A stretch of DNA of 63,673 nt, filler included, from Salisapilia sapeloensis CBS 127946 (Eukaryota > Protista > Oomycota), in assembly GCA_023334545.1 (NCBI GenBank). It is 7 parts of 7 records of this genome, joined end to end, with 100 filler letters (N's around TTAATTAATTAA, not from the genome) between each part and the next. Parts side by side here need not be neighbours in the genome. Positions count along the whole stretch, not along the records: positions 22,229 to 45,655 come from JAADVB010000265.1; 6 more parts are not named here. One strand, written 5' to 3'. The position numbers and the translations under genes were made by a program. This document shows positions 22,229 through 35,874 of this stretch, piece after piece. Position 1 is the stretch's first letter. Every line of letters starts with the position of its first letter. The notes beneath the pieces are model-generated. The model saw nothing but the letters and a program-made list of their open reading frames with translations. It searched no databases and was not told where the DNA came from.

Positions 22229-22915
22229 ATGGATAGAGCTGTAGACGGCAGCTAACTGAGGCGGATACACGACCATGACAATTCCTCTGGAGTCGTTCGC
22301 AGCGTGGTTACTCCTATCTAAACTTTCTACTCGCGACCGTGCTTTCTGAATCAGGCGCTCTGATTGTGGGGCCAACTTGATGTACTCGACTGCGTCTTCG
22401 CACTTGAAGCGGACATCCACGGGCGTCGCTTCGCAGGTTTCGGACGTGAGGAAGTGCACATCTTTTTTGTTCACAGTGTCGTATAAATGGCAATAGCCCA
22501 TAGAGTTCCCTCTTATAACACGGTCACAAGTTCGATCGATCTGATTACGGCCTGGACACTTGCCAGTGCCCCTCCATTCTCTGCATTCGTAGTTGGTTTC
22601 ATAGTCTACATCCTCCTCCTCCGTTTCATTGAGCACAGGTGCCAAAGGAATCGAAGATATGTTCGATACAGCAACCTCGACGCTATGAACAGGAAGCGAT
22701 ACAGCCTCTTCTGTTGATACGGTGGAAACCGTTGGAGGACAGTACGAAAGCAAGCAGAACAGATTCACAATTACAGTCATGAATACGATAGCCAGCATAC
22801 TCATAAACATTTTCCGCCTCTTGGACACTACATTCGAAGCCACTAACGAAAGTTTGTGCTCAGCGGGTTTGGAAGGCAATTCGATCGTTTCGACAACGTG
22901 CTTCATCATGTTCAT
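22229..22915 (-). CDS. GT71 (MNN-type alpha-mannosyltransferase)-like protein, N-terminal half, cut by the gap
   Basis: Type II TM anchor, Cys-rich CREWRGTG..C..GYC..C..FKC domain, then RGIVMVVYP as in the copy at 33856. An Inr-FPR-like CCATTCA-GC-ATTTTAC upstream supports ATG 22915. Confidence 0.8.
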
Positions 22916-23367
22916 GTGAGACTCTTGTATGCCTGCACGAACAATGGACGGTAAAATGCTGAATGGCTTCTGCTGTGTACGAGTAAAAGCATGCGTGAAG
23001 CATATGCTTTCAACCAACGTGTCGGAGGGAAGGTACAGCGTAAAGGTGTGCGGGATGGATATTCCAGGTAAATCATGAACATTCCTCATCGCTCTTCTTG
23101 GCGTACAAAGCCGTTCAATTCACGCCATTTATACTTCAGGCACTTTTATGAGCTCATTAACAAGACCGAAGGATATGTCTCGCCTTCGCGTTAGCACAGT
23201 GTGCACCTAGTAAGAGTCGGATGCACCTGCTCAAAGGATACGAGTCGCAAAAGGGTAAACTGAAACATGTGACAGACCACCGAGTTTAGGTTGCACAAAC
23301 GGACCATACCTTCTTGCAACCTCCGACCAAGTAATTTGACACGAAAAGCGCGCCGATCGCAGTGATC

Positions 23368-24573
23368 ATGGCATCACTTTCCAGACGCGTTTTCAAGCTT
23401 CTATTGCTCCTTTGCACGTGGGAAGTAGGTGCCACTGAGCCATGCGAAGCGCTTTTTTCTGGAGACAAGTTCCTGCAACGTCTCGACCACCGCCTTCGTA
23501 CGATACCTCCATCATGCATTTCTTTCTACCTACCGACTCACGCTGTGTAGACGAAAGCCTTGACGTAGAAAATCCAGACTTTTACTCTGCACGTGAGAAC
23601 ATTGAAGGTGCCTTTGTGGCGAACGAGTAATGTATTATCTTTTCCACGCAACTACCACGACACTAAACACGAAAGAATAGATTTGACCGAGGCCGGCCTC
23701 TGTCCATCGTCCTGTTTTCCAACTCTACAGAGGTCGATTTATACCAATATCTCTACATTGACATGACTGTAACAAGCTGATAGGCGCTGAAAGCCATGAG
23801 CTCTGCTGTCGCTTCGTCCATCTTTGGAGAGAAGCCACCAAAGCACAGTGTTTCCACCATCGACTTTCAGCAGGTACCATGACTTTTCCTCCTATGAAAT
23901 GTACCTGGACTAACTCGTTTGAGCTCAGCTCTTGTCAGATGATTCGGAGGCGTCCGTTAGCAGCACACGCATCCATCTTCGCTCGTCTTTGGCTCTACAG
24001 CTATTTGAATGCCCATCGCGTAGTTTACACGTCTTTGAGAACGTGCAGGTGGTCTCCGATGCGTCCCTCCCCATTCTTGACACGTTTCTGGACCCGCTCA
24101 ATGGCAAGCGAGCTCAATTTTATCATGAGTCTACGTCTTTCGACTGCACCAATGCCATCTTTTTGTTTCTCTTCCACACCAACACACGTCCCGATCCGTC
24201 TTGGCGAGACTTTTTGCTCCACCACTGGACGAGAGAACAATTCGATGGAGACACGGACGACGCATTCACTCCGCAGGCACTCGTCGGAAGACTATCAGAA
24301 GGCGTTTCTTTCTTTGGAAACGTGTCTAAGGAGACGGAACCTTATACAGATAGTATCCTAAGTGGTGAATGGCGCTTCCTACTGGAAGAGAAACCAAAAG
24401 CTCGTAAGGAAGTCGGGCTGTTCGTTTTCGTCGGACTTGTCTTTGGGTGTGCTGCTGGTCTGTGGACAGAAGACCAGTCCGATGCAGACGCCAAAAAGCC
24501 AAAGCCGAAGGCAAACCGAAAGCGAGGGAAGACCGGAAAGAAGTCGAGCCAGAAGAAAAGAAGGAGAGCGTAG
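23368..24573 (+). CDS. Torsin/LAP1/LULL1-like degenerate AAA+ membrane protein, 5 exons (23368-23497, 23551-23626, 23681-23732, 23784-23873, 23929-24573), 330 aa
   Basis: Four GT-AG introns of 51-55 nt give a continuous 993-nt CDS with a signal peptide, an AAA-like core without Walker A/B, a C-terminal TM and a basic tail. The family call is by recalled-sequence comparison only. Confidence 0.6.
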
Positions 24574-25078
24574 AGTAAGAGTGAATGAATATCTTTTCTT
24601 TGAAGCGTACCGCGGCTGTATCACACGCAACAACAACACAGTTGCAATTGACACGACTTTGCCGCGAGCTCTGGAACATGCTAGCCCTCCACCTCCATTG
24701 TGGTCTCCCTCATGGCGCCAAGCTAAACGCCTGCCATTGCGCGGAATGGACGCTCCTACAAGAGGTTGCCTCGAAGACAGACGTAAATCGCGAAAATCTA
24801 AATGTACCTAAACCTCGACTACAGCAACGACATGTCTCCGGCTGGTCGTTCAATGTGTCGCCGTCGCGAGTGGCATCTCGTCTCTCTTTATACTGTGGCG
24901 AAAGAACTGCAGAATTTCTATCCAGTACCTGCTCTATATGAAATGCATGGAACTATATTTTTGTGCGTGACAGCCACCTGGTCTATCCTAGCGTACCTTT
25001 GTGGGGTTCAGTAGCGGGCTCTCCGGCCTGTGATGCTGCTTGGCGAACCTACCAATTTAAGTTTCTTAACGATACGAT

Positions 25079-27091
25079 ATGTCTTCCGATGGAGGATCCA
25101 CAGCGTCCTCAGTCTCCCAGCGACCACAGGACGCGCCCACCTTTGCTCCGAACCTACTGTCTTTCTTCCCACCGGAAGAAGTTTGTCGAGATGCTACCAC
25201 GCCACTCAGAAAACTACAAAGTCTTCACCAGGATAAATGGACCAAAGGTAAGATACTGGGTAAGATGCAGACGTTTGAGCTTCAGAAATCGGACTTGGAT
25301 CTAGCCCATGCCATCGCTGCCAGCGTCCGTGTTCCATGTCGTCTGGACGAAGCTCTCCGAGCGCTCGTCGCGTCCTCCCCACAAGCGTTCGAGAGCAACA
25401 TGCGAGCCCTGTACGGGAACTGCTACAAGGGCGGCTGCATTCTGCTGCCGCCGAGAGCGATTGCTCTCGAGACTCATCCTTCGGGGCCTTCTCCCGCGTC
25501 TCACTCTGCTAGTGGATTCTACGACAATGATTCTTCTTTTACCATACCTGCCCATGTAGGCGCTCAAATGGTGGTCGTATCTCCCTACAGAAAAGCAAAA
25601 TCAGGCTTGCATTCTACGCCCAAGCGACAGCAGCTGGGCATGACCACACTCATCCGCCACGACTCACCTTCCAGAGCACTCATCCTGACCAAAACCCTGC
25701 CTCGTCAAGTCTTGCGCAACCTCGTCGCGGCGTCCGATTGTTCTGCACTGACGCACTCGATCGACCACATTGCTGCCTGCTTTGAATTGGACTGTCGAGA
25801 GGAAAAGGATGGGAGACCGCACACGGTCATCCAAGCCTACGTCTATGCCTCCATGGTCCCTCCACACCAGTACGGACTGCTACAACAGAAGAAACTTGCT
25901 GGAGACGCAGACGTCCACTGGAATGCACGCTTCCTCAAGGTCGCCGATACGGAGGCGGAGGGACTGCTCCAGCTCTTTCTCCACTCCATCTCCATGATCG
26001 CGCCCATCACACGCAGACGCCGTCTCGGGACCTTGGATTTCCGTCCGCAGCCAAAAGGAAAGCAGTCGAAAGACGTCGGTTGTATGGTCTGCATGAAGAC
26101 CTTTACGATGCTTCGGTCCCAACGCTTCTGTCAGTTGTGCGACCGAAGCGTCTGTAAGGCATGTGCCGAGGTCTACGCCGTCGAGTATGAAAGCGATGCT
26201 CGACTCAGTCAAAAGCGCATTTGTGCCAATTGCATCTCTTACTTCGAAGCCGACATCCTGCGTCCGTCAGGACAGAAGACATCTTCGGAAGGCTCGGATG
26301 GACGAAGTGACCGGACGTCCAGTGGAAGAGGAGAGGATCCGTCGTTAGGATTGACCATCGCATTATACAGCCGGGACATCAAGGAGCGGAAGAGGGCGGT
26401 GGCAGATCTGACAAGGCTGACAGCTACGTGCAGAAGTGATAATATATTACAGATGGTCACCAAACGGCGTGAGCATCAGTACGGCGTCGTCTCTCCTCAC
26501 CAGATCTTGGAAGCCATTGATGAAGTCATGGAAACCCAACTGACTGCCACTAGGAAGCAGATCGTTGGATCCATGACGCACGTGTCAACAGAAAAGGCTC
26601 TGCGTCGATGGCCTCCTAGGCCAAGTGACGAGAAAGAGGATGCTCGGCTCTGGTGCATTGAACGCACACGGATGCTGGATGTCGACTACGACCGAATGCT
26701 CCTGGACCTCATTTCCGAAGTGGCTGCCACAAAGCTGCAATGTGCCACTGCCTATATCGCAGCAACAGACGACACGATGACGACTGTCTTGGGCACGTAC
26801 GATCTTCCTCCCTCGGCGTTTAATTTGCCGAGAGACCAAACGCTGTGTGCACATGTGCTATATCGAGAGGCGCCAGTGGTCATGGATGTGCTACCAGACT
26901 ACGCCTCTGACGCCGGTGTCGATGGCTCCACTTTCTTTGCTGGGTTTCCAGTACTGACATCCGATGGCGACGTCATTGCCCAACTTTGCGTATTGGACGT
27001 GAGCCCGAGAGAAGGGCTCAGTGCGTTCGAATGGGCCGCCATGGTCCTCCTATGTCACTTAACAGCAGAGTTTCTATCCAAACCTCAATGA
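25079..27091 (+). CDS. START-like + FYVE + GAF domain protein (oomycete-type architecture)
   Basis: CMVCMKTF...RFCQLCDRSVCKAC...RICANC (FYVE); TLCAHVL...FFAGFPV...QLCVLD..PR (GAF). Confidence 0.85.
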   Translation: MSSDGGSTASSVSQRPQDAPTFAPNLLSFFPPEEVCRDATTPLRKLQSLHQDKWTKGKILGKMQTFELQKSDLDLAHAIAASVRVPCRLDEALRALVASSPQAFESNMRALYGNCYKGGCILLPPRAIALETHPSGPSPASHSASGFYDNDSSFTIPAHVGAQMVVVSPYRKAKSGLHSTPKRQQLGMTTLIRHDSPSRALILTKTLPRQVLRNLVAASDCSALTHSIDHIAACFELDCREEKDGRPHTVIQAYVYASMVPPHQYGLLQQKKLAGDADVHWNARFLKVADTEAEGLLQLFLHSISMIAPITRRRRLGTLDFRPQPKGKQSKDVGCMVCMKTFTMLRSQRFCQLCDRSVCKACAEVYAVEYESDARLSQKRICANCISYFEADILRPSGQKTSSEGSDGRSDRTSSGRGEDPSLGLTIALYSRDIKERKRAVADLTRLTATCRSDNILQMVTKRREHQYGVVSPHQILEAIDEVMETQLTATRKQIVGSMTHVSTEKALRRWPPRPSDEKEDARLWCIERTRMLDVDYDRMLLDLISEVAATKLQCATAYIAATDDTMTTVLGTYDLPPSAFNLPRDQTLCAHVLYREAPVVMDVLPDYASDAGVDGSTFFAGFPVLTSDGDVIAQLCVLDVSPREGLSAFEWAAMVLLCHLTAEFLSKPQ

Positions 27092-27788
27092 ACAAATACT
27101 GTACCTACTTATTATCCTTGCCTTTTTCGCGTCCTTTGCACAGGACACCAAGCTTTCCACGTAAAGCAAACGCACATCACTTTTTGCGACACACTTGTCG
27201 ATTTCTAATACGTAGCCACACAAAAGCAACGGACGACAGAAACTTGTCCGATCTCACGGCATGACGAGCTTCGTTCTCTGTATTTCTACTCATGTTAGCG
27301 CGCCGTTACATCAGCAGCTATCGGTCGCCGAGTGTAATGGTAGGGAAGGGAATAAGAGACTGCAGAGGTAGCTCCATCTAAACTAGGTAGCGATGACTCA
27401 GCTGTAAAATCAAAGCAACGAATCTACTAGTGGAGTAAACGCATGCAGGTTCATGTTGATCATGTGCTTAACTTGGATATCCTCCTCGCGGTGCACTTGT
27501 GTCGGTTTCCACTTTGGCCATCAATCTCGCTTTTCTATTGTAAATTGCGATCCTGTAGCCCTCCAGGTTTTTCAAAAGATCGAGTATTCTACTGTGCACA
27601 TTTTTTACTAGTGCTGGTAGTTAGCAAACATGATTTTCGGAATAGATCCGGTCAAGATGGATGTTCAGCAGCTATGAACCCATATTTGAAGCTGAGGTGA
27701 AGCACCGCCTGATTCGTGGAAAATGGGATTTTGACGTGGCAATTGGACGAAAACGTGTCAAAGCCGTTTGCGAAAGAACGCGAGCGCG

Positions 27789-30700
27789 ATGAGTACAAGA
27801 GTCCTGTGCGTCGTACTCGCGGTATGCGTTCTCAACAGTACCAAGGCGGCGGTCATGGACTCTGCAGGGATGCATTTCACCACATCGGAAAGTCTATGCG
27901 CCTACCACTGCAGTCGACACATGTTGCAACGAAGCTCGGACTGTGCATCCAGCGACTGCATGTCCAATCGCCGGTGGCTCCAGCCAGAGGAGGAAGCCGA
28001 TACGAATGTGACGACCATTGGGCTCATGCAGTGCGCGAGCATCCCGCAAGCTTCGTCCACTCTAGACTTCGAGTGGGTTTCCTTCTCACCCGATAACGCT
28101 CGAAACGCCTTTCGGACGTTCGCTACCTCCTTCTTCCAGGCGTATGATGCGCTATCGACTAGTCCGAACGCTACGTTTGATGCATGTCAGCTCCAGTTTC
28201 TACAGTCAAAATTGCTTCCTGAAGTCACTTCGGACAGCACGTCGCATGTTGTCGATGTCATGCTTGTCCAGTTGGAGCGCGAAGACATCGATGAACAAGA
28301 GTGCGTTCAGTCGATAAAAGACATCTCTTCCAACGACAAGTTCACGCCGTTTGTTACTCGACGAGATGACGTGAATGACCAAGACACGGTCTTACTGGTG
28401 CGACTGACAGGTCCCGAAGCAGAAGAGATCAACGATCTGTCGTGCGTTGCCAGTGTTCTGCAGCTGCCTCCGATTCTAAAACTAGTTCCTTTCGCACGCA
28501 GTTGTCTTCAGTCGCAACAGTCCGACTCTGCTCCACCACTAGAAATTCGACTGGCAAACGAGGCCAACAAGACTTTTGTCCTATCTTCCTTCCAGTCCCA
28601 ACTCGAAACGCAGTTCGGAATCTCTAACGTCTTTACCATCAACAGCAAGAGCAAAGCCAACTCTCTATTCACAAGGTCACTTGCCAACATGCAGACGTGG
28701 ACGTACGTCGTGGCCCTTGCCATTTCCTCTTCGTCCGTCGAGTGGATCGACGTGAAGCTCGAGATGAGTCAGAACTCTCTTTCGCCAGAGCATCCGCTCT
28801 TGATACAAACCGAGAGACGTCTGGATGAGTTCGCGATGCCTCTTGTCGGCGTGGAGAGCGTGAGGGAAAAAGGGCTCACTGGCACAGACGTTATCGTTGG
28901 CGTCACGGACTCTGGGCTCTATCTAGACCACGACCAGTTCGACCAAAAGTCTCGTAAGATCTATGACGACCCAGACCAGGACGCCCGCAAAGTTGTATAC
29001 TACAACGCGTGGGCAAACAGGCAGGACGAGAGCAACCAGGGCACTTGTGGGCATGGCACCCACGTCTCTGGACTGCTGGCTGGAAGTTCTTACAGCGGCA
29101 AGTTTGACGACCTGGGCATCGCGTCGTCTGCCAAAATCGCCTTCATGGACATTGGCGAGCTGGACTCTTCCTGCACCACTTTGTCGGACAAGTGTCCTGT
29201 CCATTTGTCTACGCCAGCAGACGCTGGCGACTTGCTCGAGTCTCAGATGAAGGTTGGTGCCAAGATCTTCTCCTTCTCATGGGGAACGCCAGGGAGCGAC
29301 TACAGCGACCAAGCGAGAGACCTGGACGACTTCATCTACAACAACCCTGGCATCTTGCTCGTAGTGGCAGCAGGCAACGGCGGTGACAACGTTCAGTCGA
29401 GCAATCCGGACGGAGCCATCTCGTCTCCGTCTGGTGCCAAGAACGTCATTTCGGTCGGAGCTTCCCTCAACTCGGTCAATTCCTTCATCGTGTCGGACGG
29501 AATCCAGTGTCAGGACGTGTACAACCAGTACGCCATCGCGTCCTTCTCGTCTCCTGGACCCACGTCCGACGGTCGGATGAAACCGGATGTGGTGGCTCCC
29601 GGACTGAGTCTCGTGTCGGCTGAATCCATGCGTCCTGGCGTCCGGACCAAGACAGGAGACTTGTGTTCCCTCCAAGGCACTTCCCAAGCCACACCCATGG
29701 TCGCTGGCATAGCAGTCTTACTGTACGAGTGGCTGCGAGACGGATGGTGGAAGGCTGGCGTCAAGGACGAGGCGTACGGCATGAAGAACGTCCCGGCGTC
29801 TTTACTCAAAGCGCTTGTGGTTCACAGTGGAGAGTCTCTCAACCGCCGACTAGGTCCGATGACAGAGAACACCGTCATCAGCTGCACTGGTCTTAAGCAG
29901 TCGTCGACAAATCTAAAGTTCCCCGATAGGTTCCAAGGGTACGGACGCCCGAATGTGTCGAGTGTCATTGACTTTGCCACCGACCAGCCGTCTCTCGTCT
30001 TTCTACCGAACTCGTCCGACCTAGGTCCTCCACGCGTGTCGCACGGAGAAAGCGTCTACATTACGTTTACAGTGCCGAAGAACGTGACCTTGCGAGCAAC
30101 TTTGGTGTGGACGGATCCTCCTGGGTCAGTCCATGCAACGTCGCAACTCCAGCACGACTTGGACTTGGCTGTGTCTGTTAGAAACGCCTCGTCCAAGACG
30201 TTCGTACCTGCCACGGCTGAAGAAGGCATTCGTAGAGACAGAAGGAATAATGTCGAGATGGTCCTCGTCAGCTACGACGATCTCCTCGCTGCAGCAAAGG
30301 ATGCATCGAACGGAAGCTTTTCTGCAGTCGGACCGAACGGAGAGATCGAGGTGGATGCAGTCGTCTACGGTCGGAGCGTGCTGCAGAATGCTACTCAAGA
30401 ATTTTCCTTTGTGGCGTCCAGCAGCTCCATCAAAGTGGCTGCGAATGGAAATGGAGGACCAGAGTCTGATGGATGGAGTGCATGGATGACTGTCGCCATC
30501 GCCGTCGGGTGTGTCCTACTCTTGCTTGTAGGCTTGTTCATCCTGGGCGCCTGTTTGAAGCGAAAGAGAAGGAAATTGCCAGTGCATGCACGAGGAGTTC
30601 AGAACCTGTCGAACGAGAACAGGTACACGCATGGGCCACCAGAGTACTACGTCGACACTTCCGACCCGGTGCATGCCCACATTGGCTCACAAGGCGGACA

Positions 30701-30923
30701 CCAGTGTCCGTTCTGCCAGTACCGAGTGGGTGACGCCGTGATATTGGTGAACCACGTAGAGGTCATGCACGCCGACCCGACGATCTATCGAGGGAACGGC
30801 AGATCTGCAGGACAGAACGCGAATGGAGATGCTAGCGTCAACCACTGTCCGTTCTGCTCCTTCCAGTCACCAGACGCAGTGATATTAGTAAATCACGTGG
30901 AGCACATGCACAAAGAGCAGTGA
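27789..30923 (+). CDS. Type I membrane subtilisin-like serine protease (S8) with two C-terminal C2H2 zinc fingers
   Basis: Signal peptide; catalytic GVTDSG, HGTHVSG and GTSQATP motifs; LVWTDPPG jelly-roll domain; TM helix; two CPFC-X11-12-HVExMH repeats. Confidence 0.92.
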   Translation: MSTRVLCVVLAVCVLNSTKAAVMDSAGMHFTTSESLCAYHCSRHMLQRSSDCASSDCMSNRRWLQPEEEADTNVTTIGLMQCASIPQASSTLDFEWVSFSPDNARNAFRTFATSFFQAYDALSTSPNATFDACQLQFLQSKLLPEVTSDSTSHVVDVMLVQLEREDIDEQECVQSIKDISSNDKFTPFVTRRDDVNDQDTVLLVRLTGPEAEEINDLSCVASVLQLPPILKLVPFARSCLQSQQSDSAPPLEIRLANEANKTFVLSSFQSQLETQFGISNVFTINSKSKANSLFTRSLANMQTWTYVVALAISSSSVEWIDVKLEMSQNSLSPEHPLLIQTERRLDEFAMPLVGVESVREKGLTGTDVIVGVTDSGLYLDHDQFDQKSRKIYDDPDQDARKVVYYNAWANRQDESNQGTCGHGTHVSGLLAGSSYSGKFDDLGIASSAKIAFMDIGELDSSCTTLSDKCPVHLSTPADAGDLLESQMKVGAKIFSFSWGTPGSDYSDQARDLDDFIYNNPGILLVVAAGNGGDNVQSSNPDGAISSPSGAKNVISVGASLNSVNSFIVSDGIQCQDVYNQYAIASFSSPGPTSDGRMKPDVVAPGLSLVSAESMRPGVRTKTGDLCSLQGTSQATPMVAGIAVLLYEWLRDGWWKAGVKDEAYGMKNVPASLLKALVVHSGESLNRRLGPMTENTVISCTGLKQSSTNLKFPDRFQGYGRPNVSSVIDFATDQPSLVFLPNSSDLGPPRVSHGESVYITFTVPKNVTLRATLVWTDPPGSVHATSQLQHDLDLAVSVRNASSKTFVPATAEEGIRRDRRNNVEMVLVSYDDLLAAAKDASNGSFSAVGPNGEIEVDAVVYGRSVLQNATQEFSFVASSSSIKVAANGNGGPESDGWSAWMTVAIAVGCVLLLLVGLFILGACLKRKRRKLPVHARGVQNLSNENRYTHGPPEYYVDTSDPVHAHIGSQGGHQCPFCQYRVGDAVILVNHVEVMHADPTIYRGNGRSAGQNANGDASVNHCPFCSFQSPDAVILVNHVEHMHKEQ

Positions 30924-33706: not shown

Positions 33707-33855
33707 AGAGCTTAATTTTGTAACAATTCTATCGATCTGCATTCCCTTGAGACGTCATCGTTTGTACCTGTCCTCTACAGTACGTTTCTAATTTTACAGA
33801 TGTGCCAACGACTGCACAGGATAGCACACGATCGCAGCACTCATCAAGTCAAACG

Positions 33856-35874
33856 ATGACGAGGAGCTTTCGACGGCCTGTCTTTCCAGTAGCTCTAGCT
33901 GCCCTCCTCGGGTGCTACCTGCTCTTCGTCTTCTACGCATACCCTTCCATCTCCAGCATGAGCCTCGCGTCGGAACACCTACGAGGCGTCGTGTCGAGCT
34001 CGAAGCAGCCACCACCTGACACTCAAGTCGAGAAGACGCTAGACGACGCGCAAGAGGCATTCGAGGCTGACCCGTTCAATGTGCACGGTGATGTTGGGAG
34101 CACACGTGATGATACTGGTGAACTTTCGGAAGCTCCGAATGCCGTACAAATGACAATGATGCCTCCGTCGGAGAAGCACCAATCGGTAGTGGACGTCGAT
34201 GAAAAGAGGGAGGAGGATTTGGAACGGAATATAGATCTTTCTATTGCCCATGGGGCACCTTCTTTCTATCCTTCATCTTCCCCCGTTCCGTCCTCGTCGC
34301 CCGTGATCTCAGGAACGATCGAAGAGCATGAAGAACTACTCGAAAAGCGACGGCAAGTGCTGGCTGAACGCAAGGCAGCTTTGGCAAAGATCGAAGAAGA
34401 AATCGCCTTGGCTCAAAAAGCCTTCGACAAAGAGAATGAAAAGGTAGAGACTCTCAAACTGGCCGAGATGCTGGACATCCGTACTCAACCAAAGCGACTG
34501 AGGAATTTTAAATGTCTCGGATGGCGTCAGACCGGTGGATGTAGTGCCTTTGGTGATCGTGAACCGCAACAAGATGCAGACTGTGAGACAGAAATCCACG
34601 CTGGCAGCTCTGGCTTTTGTGAGCTCCTGGACACGGACACGAACGAAAGGTTCCGTGCCATGCAAATCAACTGCGACAGTTTGAAAGACGAGGTCATCTT
34701 CCAATGTTCCCAAGCAACGGACTTTGCGAACTTTGCTGTGCGCAGTGAAATGATGATCTCAAGTGTCGAAACGCAGGTTGGCCAGGGGAAGTTGCAAGGA
34801 GAGAAAGGAAACGGTCGCGGCATCGTTATGGTAGTTTACCCTCGCTTAATGACGAGTGCATACGCAACGATCAAAGCTCTGAGAGATCTACAGAAGTGTA
34901 CGCTACCAATCGAACTATGGTATCGACCAACGGAGATGAGTCGAAGTCCGACGAAAAGGAGAATCTTGCAAGCGATTGCGGATAAAATTGACAACATCGA
35001 GCTGCGTCCGATCGATCAGCTGCATGTGAGTGGCTTCAACAGCAAGATCCACGCCATTTACTTTAGCAACTTTCGTCACGTCTTGTTCCTCGACTCGGAC
35101 AACACTCCTCTTCACGACCCTGCTTTTCTATTCGACACGCCGCAGTACCAAGACACGGGTGCGCTCTTCTGGCCAGACTTTTGGCACCCGAATAACACTA
35201 TCTTTAACATCCACGAACGATCACTCTTGTGGCAACTAGTCGACATGGAATACGTTGACATGTTCGAACAGGAGAGTGGACAGCTCGTCATTGACCGCTA
35301 TCGATCTGCAGTACCACTGGAGCTCGTTCAGTTTTACGCTTCTCACGTACCCAGTCATTTCGATCATATGAAACTAGCTCATGGAGACAAAGACTTGTTC
35401 CGCTTGGCATGGCTTAAGACCAATCGGTCATACACGATGGTGCCTTTCCCTCCAGCATCCGTAGGTACCGTCCGCCATGACGTGTACTGCGGGATGACGA
35501 TGGTTCAGTATGATCTTGACGGACAGATTTTATTCCTCCATAGGAACAACAAGAAGCTAAACGGCCGTCCTTTTGCGAAAGATCATGCGTATTGGCGCGC
35601 TGTACAGAGCTTTGACTGGAAAGGAAAGAGATTGGAAAACGTCGAGCTGGAGAATGGAATGATGACATACAAAAGTATAAAGGAACACTATCAAGTGGCT
35701 ATCCACAACAGCGCTCCACTTTTCCGAGAGTTCCAGTCTTGCTACGGGGCAAAAGTATCATTTGCAGAGGATTCTTTTAACTTGACCTATGTGGCGAACG
35801 AAGAAATTGGCAGACTTGAAGATCAGATTATCGACTTTGCTCATGAAGCGGCGTTGATGCAACGCCCCTCCTAG
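33856..35874 (+). CDS. GT71 family alpha-mannosyltransferase-like glycosyltransferase
   Basis: TM anchor, Cys-rich domain, RGIVMVVYP, LPIELW, LFLDSDN (DxD), FWPDFW, QESGQLVID, GDKDLFRLAW. Confidence 0.9.
   Translation: MTRSFRRPVFPVALAALLGCYLLFVFYAYPSISSMSLASEHLRGVVSSSKQPPPDTQVEKTLDDAQEAFEADPFNVHGDVGSTRDDTGELSEAPNAVQMTMMPPSEKHQSVVDVDEKREEDLERNIDLSIAHGAPSFYPSSSPVPSSSPVISGTIEEHEELLEKRRQVLAERKAALAKIEEEIALAQKAFDKENEKVETLKLAEMLDIRTQPKRLRNFKCLGWRQTGGCSAFGDREPQQDADCETEIHAGSSGFCELLDTDTNERFRAMQINCDSLKDEVIFQCSQATDFANFAVRSEMMISSVETQVGQGKLQGEKGNGRGIVMVVYPRLMTSAYATIKALRDLQKCTLPIELWYRPTEMSRSPTKRRILQAIADKIDNIELRPIDQLHVSGFNSKIHAIYFSNFRHVLFLDSDNTPLHDPAFLFDTPQYQDTGALFWPDFWHPNNTIFNIHERSLLWQLVDMEYVDMFEQESGQLVIDRYRSAVPLELVQFYASHVPSHFDHMKLAHGDKDLFRLAWLKTNRSYTMVPFPPASVGTVRHDVYCGMTMVQYDLDGQILFLHRNNKKLNGRPFAKDHAYWRAVQSFDWKGKRLENVELENGMMTYKSIKEHYQVAIHNSAPLFREFQSCYGAKVSFAEDSFNLTYVANEEIGRLEDQIIDFAHEAALMQRPS

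Follow-up and report, generated by a model that had tools for sequence, protein, structure and literature searches.

An oomycete family of luminal pseudo-AAA+ proteins resembling LAP1 and LULL1, the activators of torsins, described from a Salisapilia sapeloensis gene

The stretch of DNA analysed here (the window: 63,673 nucleotides, filler included, joined from seven parts of the Salisapilia sapeloensis CBS 127946 assembly GCA_023334545.1) contains a five-exon gene at positions 23,368 to 24,573, in the part taken from JAADVB010000265.1. It encodes a 330-residue protein, and belongs to a conserved oomycete family. The luminal domain of this family is predicted to be an AAA+ domain that has lost the motifs needed for ATP binding and hydrolysis, and has kept an invariant arginine at the arginine-finger position. 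This pattern of lost and kept motifs, together with the fold, resembles that of the animal torsin activators LAP1 and LULL1. The Salisapilia protein is a real LAP1/LULL1-like pseudo-ATPase, probably of independent origin, and by analogy with LAP1 and LULL1 it may act as an activator of a torsin-like ATPase.

Gene structure, topology and lost ATPase motifs

The gene is transcribed, and its splice model is confirmed by transcripts and by comparison. The five exons lie on the plus strand and join into a 993-nt open reading frame (ORF). All four GT..AG introns are skipped exactly, with no mismatches, in Logan RNA contigs from four runs of two samples (Table 1). The five-exon, 330-residue model first proposed from the sequence therefore stands. 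In the homologous gene on Logan contig L001, introns 1 and 2 occupy the same codon positions, while introns 3 and 4 have no counterpart and L001 continues in frame there. A nearer GT, at 23608, was considered as the donor of exon 2 but was ruled out as it breaks the reading frame; the donor at 23627 (GA/GTAATG) restores the frame and agrees with the RNA. The spliced product includes all the peptides first pointed out in it, namely RPLSIVLFSNSTEALKAMSSAVA, CPSRSLHVFENV, WRDFLLHHWT and TPQALVGRLSEGV, and ends in the tail KKPKPKANRKRGKTGKKSSQKKRRRA. The G+C content of the piece is 50%.

The N-terminus, MASLSRRVFKLLLLLCTWEVGA/TE, is signal-peptide-like as judged from its sequence, with RR in the n-region, a hydrophobic core and VGA/TE at the end. 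It is followed by the luminal domain, a hydrophobic 19-mer, and a C-terminal tail of 34 residues that is strongly basic (Table 1). From this order the protein is predicted to be a type I membrane protein of the endoplasmic reticulum (ER) or perinuclear lumen, with a tail that would be cytoplasmic or nucleoplasmic, in agreement with the topology first assigned to it. The same plan of signal peptide, luminal domain, transmembrane helix and strongly basic tail is common to nearly all complete family members.

The family profile was aligned by hhalign with residues 540–857 of E. coli ClpB, giving a probability of 77% and an E value of 2e-5 over 176 aligned columns. The P-loop GPTGVGKT of ClpB (K611) faces FSNSS in this alignment and is replaced by FSNST in the Salisapilia protein, and no family member has GK followed by S or T. 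The Walker B pair D677-E678 aligns with E153-N154; all members carry N, S, H, R or G, and never E, in place of the glutamate. The sensor-1 residue N719 has no equivalent, its column being variable. In the structural model described below only two residues separate strand β1 from helix α1, and there is therefore no P-loop. The loss of Walker A and of the catalytic Walker B glutamate, which had been noticed in the one protein, thus extends to every member. With the P-loop, the catalytic glutamate, sensor-1 and the lid all lost, the alignment and the model show a domain that is unable to bind or hydrolyse ATP.

The arginine finger is the exception. R756 of ClpB, in the sequence FRPEFINRID, aligns with R237 in FTPQALVGRL, the arginine of ALVGR that had been placed at the finger position at the outset, and this arginine is invariant in about 60 sequences. 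(The roles of ClpB E678 as the catalytic glutamate and of R756 as the arginine finger are described in PMC6593972.) The FTPxAxxGR block accounts for F, G and R among the seven columns that are invariant in the family, and for T, P and A among the four that are nearly so. In the model, R237 lies between a short helix and strand β5. In LAP1, R563 sits at the canonical arginine-finger position (Sosa et al. 2014, PMC4358337). Because R237 aligns with ClpB R756 and R563 holds the canonical position, it follows by transitivity that R237 is the putative equivalent of LAP1 R563.

Fold of the luminal domain

Remote searches and structure predictions were made with exon 5 (214 aa) or with orthologues, while the 330-residue protein was used in local alignments and composition scans. 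The closest full-length relative is from Phytophthora (P0005/P0028), with 43% identity over 262 residues, and the luminal domain of P0005 was modelled with AlphaFold using a 27-sequence alignment. The model has a predicted local distance difference test (pLDDT) score of 87.7 and a predicted template-modelling (pTM) score of 0.88. Salisapilia exon 5 modelled alone gave a pLDDT of 82.4 and the same order of elements.

The order of elements is α(−1), α0, β1, α1, β2, α2, β3, α3, a β-hairpin, β4, α4, β5, α5 and α6. The core is β5-β1-β4-β3-β2 with a pre-sensor-1 β-hairpin, which is the fold of the HCLR clade of AAA+ proteins (Clp-D2 type). In the P0005 model, β5 is followed by only two short helices and then by the transmembrane segment, with no small lid domain. 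The luminal domain of LAP1 has an identical order of secondary structure and likewise has no lid (Sosa et al. 2014, PMC4358337).

Foldseek comparison with the PDB gave more than 300 matches at E below 0.001. The first of these were the second AAA+ modules of ClpB, Skd3 and ClpC, at about 4e-8, and TorsinA was matched at 3.8e-6. In a search independent of Foldseek, the best structural match in the PDB was human LULL1, and LAP1 came second when the Foldseek matches were re-ranked. The structural alignments cover 203 of the 235 residues of LULL1 and 208 of the 222 residues of LAP1. In the structural comparison proposed at the outset, torsin, LAP1 and LULL1 were thus all matched; the margin of LULL1 and LAP1 over the Clp modules in structural score is small. 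In the AlphaFold database, Swiss-Prot returned Clp proteins only, and the clusters returned a family member from Aphanomyces, unnamed AAA+ proteins of protists, Clp proteins and two entries for TOR1AIP. On the basis of the models, the luminal domain is predicted to be a large subdomain of Clp-D2/torsin-type AAA+ without a lid, of which the animal torsin activators are the best solved look-alikes.

Comparisons by language-model features gave scores of 0.76–0.82, which are leads only by the tool's own grading. For two orthologues the nearest named clusters were LAP1_C, with torsin clusters next. When exon 5 was the query, first place, at 0.76, was shared by a LAP1_C cluster and a cluster of the torsin C-terminal domain. 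For P0001 the two nearest clusters overall were unnamed green-algal ones.

Three known systems are relevant. LAP1 (TOR1AIP1) and LULL1 (TOR1AIP2) (PF05609; PDB 4TVS, 5J1S) are closest in their missing lid, lost Walker motifs and conserved finger arginine, but the oomycete family has no detectable sequence or profile similarity to them. They carry a large N-terminal nucleoplasmic or cytosolic domain, where the oomycete proteins have a short basic tail. Their nucleotide pocket is closed by an N-terminally extended α1, and the oomycete model has only two residues between β1 and α1. Torsins (PF06309, with TOR1A_C PF21376; TorsinA, PDB 5J1S/5J1T) keep Walker A and B, the sensors and the lid, and are without an arginine finger; the oomycete family is reversed on all four counts. 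The second AAA+ module of the Clp/Hsp100 proteins (ClpB, ClpC, ClpA, Skd3/CLPB) is closest at the residue level, with 14–20% identity in structural alignments, and shares the pre-sensor-1 β-hairpin and the arginine-finger motif FxPxxxxR(I/L). Unlike Clp, the oomycete family is luminal and membrane-anchored, and has no nucleotide-binding motifs, lid or first AAA module.

Candidate partner, origin and alternatives

For both models, the nearest structural cluster in the ESM Atlas contains 68 eukaryotic proteins of about 436 aa and is commonest in Oomycota. Its members match the Pfam families AAA_5 (69%), Torsin (59%) and AAA_2 (35%), and the template-modelling (TM) scores of the two models to it are 0.76 and 0.64. 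It thus seems that a torsin-like AAA+ protein, whose ATPase domains are recognisable, occurs in oomycetes, and on these models it is the closest look-alike of the pseudo-ATPase family.

We favour, with moderate confidence, the interpretation that the family consists of luminal type I pseudo-AAA+ proteins which arose independently of LAP1 and LULL1 and which activate a torsin-like ATPase by means of R237. The luminal domain would dock next to an oomycete AAA+ ATPase that is luminal, torsin-like and active, and would insert R237 into the nucleotide site of this partner, completing its active site. By analogy with LAP1 and LULL1 acting on animal torsins, docking would both hold the ATPase at the membrane and turn its hydrolysis on, with the basic tail pointing toward the cytoplasm or nucleoplasm. 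The gene probably goes back to an oomycete Clp-D2/torsin-like gene that was duplicated and then decayed. The finding that the nearest structural cluster is an oomycete torsin-like ATPase fits such an origin, which would parallel the relation of LAP1/LULL1 to torsin.

A wider proposal, which we make tentatively and with less assurance, is that oomycetes run a complete luminal pair, in which a finger-less torsin-like ATPase is matched with a dead, membrane-anchored arginine donor. The arrangement could be convergent or anciently inherited, and the basic tail could direct the protein to the inner nuclear membrane.

Several observations weigh against an activator of the LAP1/LULL1 kind. The fold evidence does not single out LAP1 and LULL1, since Clp domains score nearly as high structurally and have more identical residues. 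No match to LAP1_C (PF05609) was found in Pfam, at E values up to 10, for exon 5, for P0001, P0009, P0014 and P0028, or for 28 aligned members, and Torsin (PF06309) was matched by just one of the 28, at an E value of 0.18. Neither phmmer nor the family hidden Markov model matched any chain among the PDB sequences, which include LAP1, LULL1 and TorsinA, even at an E value of 10. The topology is type I, whereas LAP1 and LULL1 are type II, with a nucleoplasmic or cytosolic N-terminal domain, then the transmembrane helix, then the luminal domain. The partner is a lead in the form of the candidate ESM Atlas cluster, recognised by its structural match and Pfam shares. In the four genomes compared (P. 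cactorum, Aphanomyces invadans, Saprolegnia parasitica and one Logan contig), no AAA+ gene was found up to 10 kb away from the family gene. Finally, the invariant arginine could be structural instead of catalytic.

Pfam gave no significant domain match for exon 5 or its relatives, and when a torsin-like ATPase was looked for with the family profile, both the exhaustive search and the word-indexed search (at E values up to 10) returned only family members. The original prediction had gone further than resemblance and proposed homology to LAP1/LULL1 in particular, and this is not supported by the LAP1_C, Torsin and PDB sequence comparisons. By sequence profile the family is a member of neither LAP1_C nor Torsin; the resemblance is one of fold, and of the pattern of motifs lost and kept.

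The strongest alternative is that the protein is a pseudo-AAA+ with a role other than activation, such as that of a scaffold in the lumen, an adaptor for substrates or an oligomerisation inhibitor, in which the arginine serves folding or binding. Such a role would suit a protein in which every motif for its own catalysis is lost, whose partner is a candidate only, and which has no AAA+ neighbour in the four genomes compared. However, the arginine-finger motif is the most conserved block of the family, which is hard to explain in a domain without nucleotide unless it acts on a neighbour, and a torsin-like ATPase cluster is present in the same phylum. We regard this alternative as rather unlikely.

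It is less likely again that the family is truly orthologous to LAP1/LULL1, which would place an activator in the common ancestor of opisthokonts and stramenopiles and require the topology to have been inverted later in one lineage. In structural comparison LULL1 and LAP1 rank first and are matched over nearly their whole length, three queries by language-model features place LAP1_C clusters nearest, or level with the nearest, among the named clusters, and the secondary-structure elements, missing lid and kept arginine are all shared. Nevertheless there is no Pfam or profile match to LAP1_C, the identity in structural alignments is 10–12% to LULL1 and LAP1 against 14–20% to Clp, the membrane topology is opposite, and the cysteine pattern differs (see below). 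The structurally nearest Atlas cluster is moreover an oomycete ATPase, in line with local duplication, and we consider orthology improbable. The idea of a secreted, host-targeted effector, prompted by the signal peptide and by the label 'RxLR effector candidate' given automatically to the Hyaloperonospora orthologue, is hardly credible and was rejected because the protein has a transmembrane anchor and an AAA+ fold, and because its gene is syntenic and also occurs in oomycetes that infect animals or other microbes (Saprolegnia, Aphanomyces, Pythium insidiosum and the mycoparasitic P. oligandrum).

Reviews and recent papers present the torsin–cofactor system as metazoan, and as absent from plants and fungi, in keeping with how it had been described at the outset; no relevant literature tying torsin to Phytophthora or to oomycete biology was found. 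What is new would be an arginine-donor pseudo-ATPase like LAP1/LULL1, with inverted topology, in a distant eukaryotic lineage. If the proposal of a complete oomycete pair is true, the torsin machinery is not an animal invention. A second lineage with an ATP-binding subunit and a dead, membrane-bound arginine donor would tell whether this architecture is ancient or evolved twice. It would also provide a non-animal system, tractable in Phytophthora, for the roles of torsin-type ATPases at the ER and nuclear envelope. For a conserved family of 'hypothetical proteins' in major plant and animal pathogens, it offers a testable annotation and corrects names of the 'RxLR effector candidate' type.

Family members, gene features and neighbouring genes

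An exhaustive profile search of 1.84 billion representatives found 27 proteins, and a word-indexed profile search found more, giving about 60 conserved relatives overall. All of the named members are from oomycetes: Phytophthora, Peronospora, Plasmopara, Bremia, Hyaloperonospora, Pythium, Globisporangium, Aphanomyces, Saprolegnia and Albugo. A few divergent members come from metagenomes, and the family may reach beyond the named oomycetes. One such member (P0062, on metagenome contig L009) is without both of the cysteines discussed below. Its contig is compact, eukaryotic and apparently intron-poor, and the neighbours there are two genes, one TMTC-like and one for RBP_receptor/cytochrome b561.

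The database names given automatically to members are 'hypothetical', 'P-loop containing NTP hydrolase', 'AAA+ ATPase domain-containing', 'RxLR effector candidate' and 'Protein BIG1'. Among P0050, P0051 and P0009 are probable misannotations, namely the Hyaloperonospora arabidopsidis orthologue ('RxLR effector candidate') and the Peronospora belbahrii orthologue ('Protein BIG1'). An 885-aa entry from Pythium oligandrum contains the family domain only at residues 535–715, and is probably a fused gene model.

The positions of the gene's features are collected in Table 1.

Table 1. Features of the Salisapilia sapeloensis gene, in window coordinates
Feature	Position	Strand	Evidence
5' untranslated region (UTR)	23151..23367	+	RNA contig of run X2 begins 23151; other runs begin 23254 or 23276
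Optional 5' UTR intron, 66 nt, GT..AG	23210-23275	+	1 of 4 RNA runs (X2)
Exon 1 (coding): start codon, predicted signal peptide about aa 1-22, conserved Cys C26, start of N-terminal helix	23368..23497	+	splice model, RNA, family alignment
Intron 1, 53 nt, GT..AG	23498..23550	+	4 of 4 RNA runs; L001 position match
Exon 2: helices α(−1)/α0 of AAA+-like domain	23551..23626	+	splice model, RNA, structure model
Intron 2, 54 nt, GT..AG	23627..23680	+	RNA; L001 position match
Exon 3: strand β1 and degenerate Walker A position (FSNST, 23715-23729)	23681..23732	+	hhalign against ClpB, family columns, model
Intron 3, 51 nt, GT..AG	23733..23783	+	RNA; not in L001 homologue
Exon 4: helix α1, strand β2	23784..23873	+	splice model, RNA, structure model
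Intron 4, 55 nt, GT..AG	23874..23928	+	RNA; not in L001 homologue
Exon 5: remaining luminal domain, transmembrane helix, basic tail, stop codon	23929..24573	+	splice model, RNA; fragment model pLDDT 82.4
Walker B equivalent E153-N154 (ClpB D677-E678)	24037..24042	+	hhalign, ClpB numbering, family column hhhh-x-N/S/H/R/G
FTPQALVGRL block with R237 (24289-24291), putative arginine-finger equivalent	24265..24294	+	R invariant in all members spanning the column, ClpB R756 alignment, model
Predicted transmembrane helix, aa 278-296 (VGLFVFVGLVFGCAAGLWT)	24412..24468	+	mean Kyte-Doolittle 2.08 over 19 residues
Basic tail, predicted cytoplasmic or nucleoplasmic, aa 297-330	24469..24570	+	15 K/R vs 4 D/E

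In place of the P-loop, the residues FSNST (with N83) make up an N-glycosylation sequon (N-S/T-S/T). Most family members keep the sequon (FSNSS, FSNST, FSNTS, FANTT, FTNAS), though some are without it (FSSDS, FSDSA). Within the ER lumen the sequon might carry a glycan at the place where an active AAA+ protein binds nucleotide.

Two cysteines found in almost all relatives are both missing from the Salisapilia protein, where they would be at residues 46 and 268. One follows helix α(−1) ('xKCLG') and the other lies where the luminal domain ends on its C-terminal side ('WRQMC'). Of 35 full-length rows in the alignment, 31 have both cysteines, three have neither and one has a single cysteine; the three rows without the pair imply at least two independent losses. 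This co-occurrence suggests a putative disulfide stapling the C-terminus, given up in Salisapilia sapeloensis. LAP1 differs in stapling its C-terminus to α1 (C424-C582), whereas the C-terminal cysteine of the oomycete family co-varies with the cysteine after α(−1).

Several long-tailed members (P0014, P0009, P0020, P0025, P0024) have tails ending in RRSxR(L/S/P)-like strings, namely RRSGRS, RRSKRP, RHSTRL, RRSSRL and RRTARP. These resemble RRSARLSA, the nucleosome-binding core of HMGN proteins. If the likeness is real, the tail would face chromatin and the protein would be located at the inner nuclear membrane. The Salisapilia tail is basic but has no motif of the RRSxR type, and matches in such basic tails could be due to chance.

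The surroundings of the gene show microsynteny with Phytophthora cactorum, in which genes for a subtilase (Peptidase_S8) and for Mannosyl_trans3 proteins also lie near the family gene. These genes are at 27768-30923 and 33802-35874 in the window, and the loci compared were L002-L004. Given the shared neighbours, the Salisapilia and P. cactorum genes are therefore orthologous. In P. cactorum, Mannosyl_trans3 is expanded to five copies around the family gene.

Upstream and divergent is an ORF on the minus strand (22229-23089), incomplete at the edge of the piece, whose product is rich in cysteine in its C-terminal part and has a hydrophobic segment, and for which no Pfam match was found. Downstream, RNA contigs of about 3.6 kb extend across a 505-nt spacer (24574-25078), which does not in itself prove a single transcript, into the next gene (25079-27091), whose 670-aa product has a FYVE zinc finger and matches GAF_2 weakly.

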